Source of the DNA: Lytechinus pictus
Lineage: Eukaryota
Assembly (NCBI RefSeq): GCF_037042905.1
Contig: NC_087247.1
Coordinates: 21,266,001 to 21,330,000, forward strand
Length of the DNA stretch: 64,000 bases
Direction of reading: 5' to 3'
A model generated the notes under the pieces. It saw only the letters and a program-made list of their open reading frames with translations, did not search any database and had not been told where the DNA came from. Shown here in pieces: positions 10,177 to 52,800 of this stretch; the first letter of the stretch is position 1; every line of letters starts with the position of its first letter. The position numbers were made by a program, and so were the translations under genes.

Positions 10177-13100
10177 TCATGGACAGGTTGGTGACTTTTT
10201 ATATTTTTCATACGATGTTTCCCAATCATTCAGGATCCCTTTCCACTCCTGAAAACTATTCTGCCATTTGATCAACGCGTCATCCCCAGTTGCTGGCAGA
10301 GATTCTGAGAATTGGAAGGTAGAAATAATGATGGTGATTATGTGCCCACAAGATGGAGCGCATTAATGTTGGTACTACATTGTCATTATTACCAATATAT
10401 GAATCCTGAACTATTTTCTTATTTTGGTTGTTGAATATTACCCTTTCTTATTATTTTGGTATCGCCATGTAAATGTATTGCTTTGGAAACTTGAATTTTA
10501 TTATGGTTGAAATAAATAAACTTGAAATTAAATTGAATTTGACATACCAACAAATTCCTGAAGTTCGGGGAAGAAAACGTTCCAGAAGTGGCATTCCCTG
10601 GCCTTGAGTGCCCTCTCAACCTCCAGATCGAGGGATATTACTTTGTGGTATAACTCAGGGACAGTAAATTGTGGCCAGTAGCTCTCTCCTTCACCAGGGT
10701 CTGTATCTTGACTCGACTTGCTCGGATCACTGAACAAATACATACATGCATTGAGTGAATCTTGTGAACAATTCTCATGAAGTGAATCATATCAACAAAT
10801 TTGTTCCCACTTATCATCAATGCAAGATCTTAACTACATCTTTTACAAAATCTACAGGAAGCAGCGATGTGGTATTCACCGAGATCTTGTGACGATATTA
10901 CCCACTACTTATGCGCCTCTGTGGAATAGGCAACATCGTGACCCGAAATAATATTGTATTGCCAAATTGACTTTTTGCTATTATGGAAGAAGTTCGATAA
11001 TGTACAAAATCAATGATCAGACTTTAAGAACTATGAAGTGTTTTACCTCTTTTTAATCTCTTTTTAAATTTCCTTTGGAAGAATGTCAACCAATGATGCA
11101 AATGTTATTTTTTAACGCGTAAATGCACGCAATACTGAATGTACGGTTTGCTTTCGTTTTGTTTTTAAGAATTGGGAATGTCCCATGTTGGTATTGCAAA
11201 TGAGCGGTGGTTATTTTATTTAAAAGCATTATTGCGGGTCTAATCGTGTGTGATCATTATGTATACAAGTGGTGCAATTGCATTCGCTTGCATCTTATTT
11301 TTAAATACAGTCTTATCCATTGATGTGTGGAAATCATTCACTTCACTGGGAAGTTCTCCCTAACAAAAGTTAATTGTGGATTTAGTTAAGTTATTAGAGT
11401 TATTAACGTTATTAGAATTTTAATTATTTGATTTGTGACGTCATATGCGAGCAGCTTTCCTACATATCGAATGGTAAGAAATCAATTAATTTTAATTTTC
11501 TCAGAAAATTGAAAATGGTTTTCACTGTACCTTCAGTATGTCAATAGACAAATAATTTCACACCCGTTCCTAAAACGACAAAAAATAAGTCATTTCAAAT
11601 CATGAAAAAAATTGAAAGTTATACATTTTATATTACATGAGATATGAGGCAGCTGCTCGTTTTTGACGTCACAAATCCAAAATTTAAAACTCTAATAACT
11701 TTCTTGATATTTAAATATATTTTCCTCAAACCTTCGCCAATATATTTTATTATTTTTTTCTGCTATTTTCACAACAAACTTTTGCTCAGGGTGATCTTTC
11801 CCTTAAGTGTAGCCATACCCTGATTTTGCGAAGTTGGTCCAAAATGTCATGACTTTCACCGAAAGCTCCTTTTCTTGATCAGTGAGCAGATGAGTCTGTC
11901 CTATATCTTCAAGCTGGTTGATGAAAGGATGCCCAAAGACAAACGCTAAATCCTCTGCGTGACCAGCTGCATACCAATGGATGCCTTGAAAACCATCGAA
12001 AGTACTCCTGCAATGACAAGAAAAAAAACGCTGGTGTTCTATCTCGTCTTGGAAAAGAAATCATCGCGTTCAAGTGATTTGTGGTGGATCATCATATAAC
12101 TATACGCGCATAGACATACATATACAATGCATATATAAGTAACTATACCTTGATGGTATATGAGTCATGAAATATTTGAATACTTGGTCGCCCTCACGAG
12201 CATGGATCCTGGAGACGAAATCTGTTGGACATACAAAGTCAGAGTCTCCAGAGTACTCTAGGAAGGTTGAAACCACATTAGCAGAAGGATCGTCTGCGAC
12301 AGACCAATCCATGTATTCCTGCAGAATGGCGTCGATAAATATATCGTCCTCGAGACCTATAGAAAGATACAAAAGGACAACGAAAGTGCATATAGTACTA
12401 CTTTTTGTTACATTCAGGAGGTTAATAAATCTTTTGAGCCCAGGCAATTATAGTACCATGATGAAATAGTTAAATTCATGTATCGAATGAAAGTCCATCT
12501 TTTCATTTCATCCGCATAGAATACCCTCGTATCGTTTATTTCAGTTGTAATCGCCAGTGATTAATGTATCATAACCTGTATTGTGTGCAACTGCGGCGCC
12601 ATGGAGTTAAAAGGAGTAGTAGTCAAAATGTGCAGTGTGATGTTGCTCCACATTTTTTTATAGGAAACAAAAGTGCGCCGGTATTCCGGTCGATCATCAA
12701 TACATGTCAGGATGTTACTCACTTTCACTTGAAAAAAGTGACCTGCACAATTTGGTCACGTGTATTTTTTATAGACTTTAAGACAATGTGAAAATAATAT
12801 GCTTCATTGAATTGCCCTGGCATTGATTTTTGGTGGGGGTGTTAGGGCATAATTCTTATTGGGGTGAAATTGCCGTGACAAGGTGTCTCAAAATAAGGTA
12901 AGGAAGTCTAAGTTTCATTGTTTGGTTAATAAAGATTATAGGTAACCAAGTAGATAAACTCTCCATATGCCAGTCAATCCAGTAAAATCTGTACTGCGAG
13001 CAAATGCGGGGTTCATAAGGTTTACTGACTAATAATTGACGGAGACCTATTAAGCCCTAACATTTGGCTGTTTTCTCAGTAAGTCCATACAAAATAGATA

Positions 13101-49818: not shown

Positions 49819-52800
49819 CTATTTGCATGTTGGCTGTTCTTTGTATTTTTCGAACGCCTGCTCCCAGTCGGTCATTTCACTCTTCCAGTCATCATAGCTC
49901 TCTCGCCATTCCTTCTGATCCTCGTCAATTTTGTCTAAGATGGAGAAGAGAAAAGGCATTAGTGCTATAATTACCATCATCACTTTTATTAACAAAATCG
50001 TTGTTATTTCCATTATTACAACAATTTTTTTTGATTTTCCTTTACGTAAATCTGGCCGGTGAAAATATAATAAATGTCTGTAAACCATGTTTCTACCTGA
50101 GAGGTAACACCCACACACAAATCAAAACCCTGCCCTCGCATTTTTCTTTTGGGACTTAAAGATGCATTTAGTCAATATTTCTTTAAACTTTAATATATTG
50201 TATTCATATACACATTTAAAGGGGGAAATACCAAAAGTTCATACTTGCAAAGGATTGAAGGGTCGGAACGTAGTTCGCCCAGAAACGACACTCGCGAGCC
50301 TTTAAAGCTCTATCCTCACCAAAGCTCGGTGAGAGTACTTTGTGTCTTAATTCAGGAATCGTGTATAAAGGCCAAAATTCATCTCCTTCTCCGGGCTCTG
50401 CACCGGGGATGGACTTGCCGGGATCACTGAATGAAAAGATTTAAGGCAGAGTTGTAGAAGGTGGTAATGTGGTGGTGGTGGTGGTATAGAAATAGGCAAA
50501 ATCTCTTTAACGTCAATGGATTGAGAGAGTTCGATATAATAATGTATGGTGGGTTTTTTTAATTGAATTACTGTGTCCAATAAAATAGTGATGACGCGAG
50601 TAAACCTACCCTGATTTTGCAAAGTTTGTCCAAAATTGCATGAACTTGACGGAGAGGGCGTTCTCTTCATCTGTCAAATTGTGCCCATGGATATGGTAAA
50701 GCTCATCGATGAAGGGCACACCCCACACGAATGTGAGGTCTTCACCATGACCTGCTCCCAACCAAGGAGTGTTTGGGATCTCACCTGCGACCATGAAGTA
50801 ACTCCTATTTGGGCATGAAAAAGACACCGATTTATGCTCGTTCAAATATAACGTGACTTAGCTATAACATTTTGTTTTTACTTCTGTAGGTATGGCCAAT
50901 GAGATGTGAGGGCACGGAAGAAAGCCACAGAGGAAAGATGGTTTCTCGTCGTTGAGTTACGAAAAAAGGTAGTGCAGCAAAGATATTCTAAATAGTGTGC
51001 ACAAAATAAGTTTTGAAGGTGTGCGCTGAATAACTTTCGCCGACTCTTGTAGTAGAGCTCGCAACCTATAAATGTATCTATAACTACATAAATTGGAGAT
51101 CATAGATCCCGTCAGGTATGTTCTACCGGCATATTTTTTATTACAAAGTTCTTTTATCAAAATGTGCATTTCCCAAATATGCCGTAACATAGTCAAGGTA
51201 CAATGAGATGAGCTGACAGGTGTGCTATCTTACTTAGATGGCGCATGGGTCATGAAATATTTGTAGACTGTTCCACCGGCCTCTGCGTGTTTCCGCATCA
51301 CGATATCTGACGGACAGGCGTAGTCTGAATCGGTTCCGTAATTCACAAACGACTGAAAGTAATCACTTTCCGGATTATCAGCCATTGCCCAGTCAATGTA
51401 TTCCTGGAACACGGCATCGTGCACGATCTCGTCGTCTGTACCATAATTTACCAGAAGACCCTTCACAAAGATCTCGAACAGGTTGCGATCCATAGGAGGT
51501 GGCGTCGGACTTCCGACATAAGATGGAAAATAAAAGTACGGGCCTATCGTACCCTCATCCCGGTTAAAACCTATCAGGAGTGGAACGTTGGCAAAGTCGT
51601 TCTTTTTATACAGATTGGCTGGAGTGTCTTCCAAAAAAGTACCATCCAGGGTCACTGGATACTGATTGCCGTATACCTGAAATGAAAAGTGATAAAGGTA
51701 CATCTTTAGAGTCATTAGAGTTTATCACTAATTATTGGTTTTACTAGTATTGAATCATAATCAATTCAAAATTGTCAAGAGGCCATATAAAGTTTTTGAT
51801 TATATATTTCTGTACAGGGAACAATATCAATCACGGACAGTCTCAAAGCGGGAGGGGGTCGTATGCTTACTATTTGAAATTCACAAGTAAACGGAGCATC
51901 ATCATCATTTTAAGAAAAAAGTAAGGTGTTTCTCTCAGGGACAGAAATCCAGCTACCGACATAAAATGTATGTTACTTGATGTCTTGGAATTTCCCCCTA
52001 ACAGTGGATGAACTTATCCCGTAAAAATCATTTTGATACAGTAATCCGCAGTAATCCCCAGTCTATAATGCATTCCACGTTACGTAGCTAAACTGTGCCT
52101 GTGATCTATTGCCTTTTAACATCAGAAATTTCCATGGGGGAAAAAATCATCAAATAATGATTAGTGTACCTTGTCGGCTGCTGTGCTCAGAGCTAAGGGG
52201 TCTTCTACATCCCGGAGGCAAGTGACCAAAGCTGAGGTAGATGTCACATCTACACAACCCATCTCTCGTCCAAGTTCCTGTGCTTTCTCAAGCTCAGCGA
52301 CTGGATCGTGCTTGAAGGCCCATGAACTAAATGCAGTTCCACTCTGTGAGTTATAAATTTTGAAATTCCGTTTGTGGCCCCCAGTACCAAGCTAATCTAA
52401 TAACTTTTTCATAATAAAATTGAAATGAGTCTGGGAAGTATTAACTTTACTCACAAAAATAGATAGAAGTGGCTGCTAATTATTTCTTTATTTAATTTTA
52501 AACGAAATAAAGACATTGTAGTGGTCACAACTCAACAGAAACTGTATTTTTTAATCCATTTGATCTTCAAAACTAAGAGCTTAAATTATGTTTAACCAGT
52601 CGTTCCGTCTTTATAACTGCATGTGACTGAAATTATAAAATCAGAGGAGGAGTTTAAAAGTCGACACCACAAGGGACCAAGATTATCTGTTTCATTAATA
52701 CTTTGAATTTGTAAAATTCTGATTATCTATACATTGTGTAGAGTAGAAAAGCACTATCATGCCCGATTGCAACATGTCTACTGCAAATGGTTAAAAGATG

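Follow-up and report, generated by a model that had tools for sequence, protein, structure and literature searches.

A tandem array of non-cholinesterase esterases in the urchin Lytechinus pictus with predicted T-peptide-like last exons

Results

The DNA analysed here (the window) is a 64,000-nt stretch of the 812 Mb assembly of Lytechinus pictus (G000:C3:21266001-21330000). A tandem array of five cholinesterase-like genes occupies its minus strand: B, C, D and E, together with A, which is truncated at the window start. The last exon of B to E encodes a short C-terminal tail that resembles the T peptide (WAT domain) of vertebrate AChE and BChE. Taken together, the results point, with a probability of roughly 0.7, to an array of secreted and catalytically competent esterases that are not cholinesterases, with an inherited T-peptide last exon through which the products likely form tetramers of the AChE-T/BChE kind.

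Spliced gene models were built from alignments to the window, initially of a Diadema homologue (P0004) and next of gene C, after which the GT-AG junctions were refined. Gene B (10177..20454) has 11 exons and encodes a predicted secreted cholinesterase-like carboxylesterase of 616-620 aa, while genes C (24219..30652, 605 aa), D (35450..46507, 600 aa) and E (49819..58010, 603 aa, with the exon 7 acceptor at 51676) have 10 exons each; the extra intron of gene B (window 13142-12356) divides the exon equivalent to exon 7 of the other three. The models of B to E are intact, with zero internal stops and only GT-AG introns, and all gene models start with a signal-peptide-like N-terminus. Full-length matches to the COesterase profile (PF00135) were obtained for gene C (E 1.4e-124) and gene B (E 8.2e-124). 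The gene C model is identical over 605/605 residues to XP_063952692.1 (P0266, 'cholinesterase 1-like [Lytechinus pictus]'), and that of gene B is identical over all 616 aligned residues to XP_054751989.2 (P0176, 620 aa); the array genes, including their last exons, are thus already present in RefSeq under the annotation 'cholinesterase 1-like'. The Strongylocentrotus purpuratus protein P0153 is 82% identical to gene D and 75% to gene E.

The terminal exons lie on the minus strand at 10177..10304 (B), 24219..24334 (C), 35450..35565 (D) and 49819..49934 (E), the last three being 116 nt long, and each ends in a stop codon. The models agree here with a preliminary description of this DNA, which had placed the last exons at these positions behind a phase-1 intron (for gene B, the acceptor at 10304 is also that of RefSeq P0176). 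Overall, the four exons span 116-128 nt, are directly preceded by AG, and follow a last intron in phase 1. That the tail is encoded separately is borne out by these preceding introns (243-1231 nt), all of which are canonical GT-AG, and by the gene C protein, whose tail matches the C-terminal end of P0266 in every residue. The tail exon of gene B has two in-frame AG acceptors 12 nt apart (10304 and 10292), of which the aligner took 10292 and RefSeq 10304, and their use could yield isoforms with a four-residue difference in the linker before the tail.

All four tails contain the motif W-x3-[YF]-x2-W-x6-W-x3-[FY]-x2-Y-x5-C just before the stop, as had been described; a search of the window translated in six frames found it at four places, and 50 shuffles never produced it. 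The peptides accordingly have three Trp residues seven positions apart with Tyr or Phe in the intervals, while a Cys stands one or two residues short of the C-terminus.

The preliminary description had recognised in this motif the T-peptide pattern, and several lines of comparison bear this out. In profile searches with the last-exon peptides, which it had proposed, PF08674 (AChE_tetra) was the top Pfam match for all four tails, with E-values from 1.2e-5 to 6.5e-4 (B, 6.5e-4; D, 4.3e-4; E, 3.3e-4). A PDB-wide search with the gene C tail returned solely T-peptide-containing chains of AChE and BChE, with the solved WAT chain 1VZJ_A as the best match (gapless, E 8.4e-5). The full-length gene C protein aligns end to end, through the tail, with Torpedo AChE (6EUC_A, E 1e-93) and with human AChE-T, and the peptide encoded by the tail exon matches the 40-residue T peptide of Torpedo and human from its residue 1-2 onwards. 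For the wider family, 56 non-identical tails from echinoderms were aligned (alignment A1). The A1 profile matches 1VZJ_A with an E-value of 8.8e-11, followed by six further cholinesterase chains, and the first chain that is not a cholinesterase appears only at 0.089. Searched one by one, each of the 56 tails of the family is matched by PF08674 (E<=0.01, the best being 2e-9).

The likeness to the vertebrate T peptide of AChE-T and BChE (PF08674; 1VZJ, solved with PRAD) extends to position and register. The vertebrate exon structure is established, and in the array the tail likewise sits at the extreme C-terminus of an esterase domain, with an exon boundary that coincides with the start of the 40-residue T peptide. 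The gapless register is shared as well: Trp10, Trp17 and Trp24, the aromatic positions 14, 28 and 31, Met21 and Cys37, the array tail differing in being 2-3 residues shorter after the Cys. It is therefore concluded, from these alignments, that the tails of B to E are to be regarded as genuine homologues of the T peptide/WAT domain.

Only 3 of 120 relatives carry a PF08674 annotation, since full-length proteins of this family score below the Pfam cut-off: against a gathering threshold of 25, full-length gene C reaches 18.2 bits and gene B gives no match. The WAT domain is hence under-annotated in the echinoderm esterase family and escapes routine annotation.

The catalytic domains to which these tails are attached keep the Ser-Glu-His triad and the glycines of the oxyanion hole (GESAG, DEG, GHAED and HGGGF, the last being HGGAF in gene E), but they differ from cholinesterases where choline would bind. 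The Cys67-Cys94 omega loop of B to E is 15-17 residues long, about 11 short of the cholinesterase loop, and has no Trp, whereas in true cholinesterases it comprises 27-28 residues and includes Trp84. When gene C is aligned with Torpedo AChE, a Tyr stands opposite Trp84, the segment with Tyr70 and Asp72 is deleted, and most aromatic residues of the gorge are gone (Tyr121 to Ser, Trp279 deleted, Phe290 to Ala, Phe330 to Leu, Phe331 to Ile, Tyr334 to Leu and Tyr442 to Glu), with Trp114 and Trp233 kept and a Tyr in place of Phe288.

A tree built without the tail sequence (midpoint root only) gives the same division. The window genes fall inside a 35-member short-loop clade (support 100), the sampled members of which are all echinoderm or hemichordate, separate from a 21-member cholinesterase clade (support 100) in which 21 of 21 members have a 27-28-residue loop with Trp. 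A true cholinesterase identity of B to E is ruled out by the active-site residues, the omega loop and the tree, in agreement with the earlier view of these paralogues. They are non-cholinesterase carboxylesterases, which the predicted triad suggests to be catalytically competent.

Genes C and D each have their own S. purpuratus orthologue in the short-loop clade (P0168 and P0153, respectively), so that the duplications predate the split of those urchin genera. The tail itself is present in 27 of the 28 echinoderm members sampled from this clade, with all five classes represented. This differs from the preliminary picture of the tail as a peculiarity of one array: it is a family-wide trait of echinoderms, found in genes that RefSeq annotates as 'cholinesterase 1-like'. 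The seven sampled hemichordate members (P0234, P0142, P0241, P0244, P0238, P0075 and P0240) have no C-terminal Trp motif, whereas hemichordate true cholinesterases do have it at their C-terminus; either the tail was lost in the hemichordate short-loop branch or these gene models are incomplete.

A search of the L. pictus genome with PF08674 gave 28 matches, ~22 of which have the Trp motif directly before a stop. At least nine tail exons lie between 21.09 and 21.33 Mb of the array chromosome, i.e. in a cluster of 240 kb, while two on contig 16 sit 4-7 kb downstream of genes of the true cholinesterase type (L074, G000:C16:29390626-29393871, and L075, G000:C16:1596069-1599323), each with a large catalytic exon, a long omega loop and Trp84. 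The gene at ~29.39 Mb is 99% identical to the 'acetylcholinesterase-like' protein P0271 of L. variegatus, and its next relatives include amphioxus and vertebrate AChE/BChE.

These contig 16 genes belong to the same superfamily as the array genes and share with them an intron after the '...FAKTG' motif. They differ in having a 27-residue omega loop with Trp84, in falling inside the cholinesterase clade, in having a single large exon for the greater part of the catalytic domain (8-9 exons in the array genes), and in a tail with W-x6-W-x7-W spacing that is one residue longer. In 9 of the 13 genomic tail exons examined, among them both exons downstream of the true cholinesterase-type genes, the acceptor precedes the codon of T-peptide residue 3 by 5 nt and is in phase 1; the other four differ. 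Because acceptor position and phase are common to the two clades, and because the peptide starts where the T peptide starts, the tail exon derives from their common ancestor and was inherited rather than acquired by convergence.

The tail exon is also well conserved. Among C, D and E its DNA identity is 79-84%, compared to 66-82% for the catalytic exons (except one C-D exon, at 93%), which ranks it with the best-conserved exons of the array and makes it at least as conserved as the catalytic ones. Its flanks, taken as 64 nt of upstream intron and 69 nt downstream of the stop, show only 22-48% identity. In alignment A1 the three Trp residues are invariant (56/56 tails), and at least 90% of the tails retain the Cys. 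The gene C tail is identical in the L. variegatus orthologues. In related species, short contigs of ~2.1-2.6 kb encode the catalytic domain and the tail contiguously, as expected of transcripts.

The exon that stands out at 93% is exon 9 of C (24665-24846) and D (36797-36978), compared to 66-83% for all other exons of the two genes, and the 150 nt that flank it show only 53-54% identity. These figures suggest either a short tract of gene conversion or an unusually strong constraint on the helix that ends the catalytic domain.

With respect to assembly, four gene C tails were modelled together with a 37-residue polyproline surrogate, a translation of non-genic DNA (locus L031) with ten consecutive prolines that is not a real urchin protein. 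The resulting 4:1 complex scores 0.80, versus 0.02 for the best of three controls, a mark that 51 of 78 solved complexes and 2 of 108 mismatched pairs attain in the calibration of the tool, which cannot discriminate which family member binds. Between runs at least 86% of the contacts recur, and the partner has a pLDDT (predicted local distance difference test) of at least 58. In every tail copy the Pro run is contacted by W12, Y16, W19, M23, W26, F30 and Y33, and rising positions of the tail meet falling positions of the polyproline, i.e. four modelled parallel helices surround an antiparallel core, as in 1VZJ. The multimer prediction that the preliminary description had suggested therefore came out in favour of its proposal as far as likeness to the WAT-PRAD assembly is concerned; with a surrogate as partner, the model speaks for such likeness and is not a proof of binding.

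The genome search for a PRAD-like partner, likewise suggested, yielded no candidate. With the PRiMA profile (PF16101) the best match in the genome (E 0.006) scored 25 bits where the cut-off is 38.6; the weak matches, many of them broken by stop codons, were rejected as partners. PRAD-like DNA patterns (CC...Pro6, Pro11) were no commoner in the genome than reversed controls, a short motif of this kind being easily missed, and the matches were rejected as mostly poly-C runs and microsatellites.

Two further features of the locus concern gene A and the introns. Of gene A only the 5' part (exons 1 to ~7, minus strand, 1..7562, from tblastn matches) lies in the window, the remainder preceding its start; the likely 3' end of this gene is a tail exon (G000:C3:21262844-21262930) that precedes the window by ~3.1 kb and has a penultimate exon upstream of it. 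Intronic G- or C-runs at ~28880-29100 (gene C intron 2) and ~53000-53170 (a gene E intron) read as poly-Gly or poly-Pro in some frames, and these stretches look like non-coding copies of a repeat.

Discussion

Following these results, it seems that the array encodes secreted esterases whose clade has lost, or never had, the choline-binding gorge, and whose tails would act in the manner of the T peptide. In BChE-type assembly, the Trp face of the T peptide packs on a polyproline-II helix, with four tails per proline-rich peptide and the Cys residues forming intersubunit disulfides (PMC5943944). Applied to the array, the tail would form an amphiphilic helix with the three Trp and four more hydrophobic or aromatic residues on one face, four subunits would wrap in parallel around a single antiparallel proline-rich peptide, and the near-C-terminal Cys would join subunits via disulfide bonds. 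The products would be soluble or anchored esterase tetramers. As for their physiological role, we infer that tetramerisation plausibly stabilises or retains detoxifying esterases, as it does for BChE in plasma.

A number of points weigh against this interpretation. The individual Pfam scores are marginal, as only the isolated gene C tail (25.3 bits) reaches the PF08674 cut-off and the other three stay below it (19.8-20.8 bits). Of the seven aromatic positions of the vertebrate T peptide one, Tyr20, is acidic in the array tails. The splicing of the tail exon and the expression of B to E are predicted from gene models; in four sequencing runs, which are only guessed to be RNA, 24-26% of the words sampled from the stretch (~29% exonic) were found, which is a weak hint. 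The surrogate partner was picked from non-genic DNA only for its ten prolines, and the pass of the complex model may stem from the tool's memory of solved WAT-PRAD and BChE tetramers. Finally, in contrast to the vertebrate system, no counterpart of ColQ or PRiMA was detected in the urchin genome by the PF16101 and PRAD-pattern searches.

If the tails do assemble, they need not do so only with copies of themselves. It is conceivable, though unlikely, that the paralogues form hetero-tetramers via their tails, anchored by a dedicated proline-rich protein, which would give combinatorial esterase complexes. In its favour, birds are known to have hybrid tetramers of AChE and BChE, the tails of C, D and E closely resemble one another, and the genome has ~22 tail-bearing genes (at least nine of them in the 240 kb cluster); the 4:1 model, moreover, passes its controls. 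On the other hand, that model is blind to the identity of the family member that binds, the dedicated partner is precisely what the PF16101 and PRAD-pattern searches of the genome failed to find, and in BChE captured polyproline peptides suffice, so that no such partner is needed (PMC5943944). The same doubt attaches to a broader proposal, in which echinoderms would use the WAT-PRAD interaction outside cholinergic signalling on about twenty non-cholinesterase esterases with interchangeable tails, forming homo- and hetero-tetramers on a proline-rich organiser or anchor. If this improbable case were true, WAT-PRAD would represent an ancient and general means of putting together complexes of secreted esterases, of which vertebrates would have kept only the use in AChE and BChE.

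Quite improbable, too, is that the tail works without tetramers, through disulfide-linked dimers, amphiphilic association with membranes, or retention and degradation of unassembled subunits in the endoplasmic reticulum. Such roles have also been described for the vertebrate T peptide, and they would fit both the conservation of the Cys and the amphiphilic aromatic face and the lack of a detectable PRAD partner in the genome searches. However, all three Trp residues that contact PRAD in the solved structure are invariant in the 56 tails, which counts against this explanation, since a dimerisation or degradation signal alone would not require all three of them, and the modelled polyproline contacts use exactly this Trp face.

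That the tail exon is an unused relic (with transcripts ending by read-through past exon 9, which could give short tails of 4-17 residues) or a chance amphipathic helix has hardly any probability left, given that conservation is limited to the exon and drops to 22-48% identity in the flanks, that the Trp residues are invariant across five echinoderm classes, that the ~2.1-2.6 kb contigs of related species join catalytic domain and tail, that RefSeq models contain the exon, and that the family profile matches the solved WAT chain at E 8.8e-11.

Assembly of the array esterases into tetramers of the AChE-T/BChE kind thus remains the preferred reading, and the system is not of a new kind. Both the domain and its mechanism are already known, as are many 'intermediate' esterases of invertebrate deuterostomes; a survey of catalytic and oligomerisation domains in S. 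purpuratus and other species by Johnson and Moore (2012, Comp Biochem Physiol D 7:83, PMID 22210164) reportedly listed many carboxylesterase/cholinesterase intermediates. In a literature search, outside which the text of that survey lay, no description was found of the tail on echinoderm esterases that are not cholinesterases. What the present analysis adds is the conserved, exon-level homologue of the tail across an echinoderm non-cholinesterase clade, the number and arrangement of such exons in L. pictus, and their escape from annotation.

Conclusions

The T peptide is usually seen as a feature of cholinesterases, which serves to position them at the synapse or to retain BChE in plasma. In the array it is found on enzymes without the choline-binding gorge, and a whole echinoderm clade of esterases without the choline site, across all five classes, retains it, more tightly constrained than much of the catalytic domain. 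The domain has been missed systematically in this clade, an annotation gap that follows from full-length proteins falling below the Pfam cut-off. Its retention raises the question of what organises T-type subunits in animals that seemingly have neither ColQ nor PRiMA, and it suggests that tetramerisation may be a general stabiliser of secreted detoxifying esterases.

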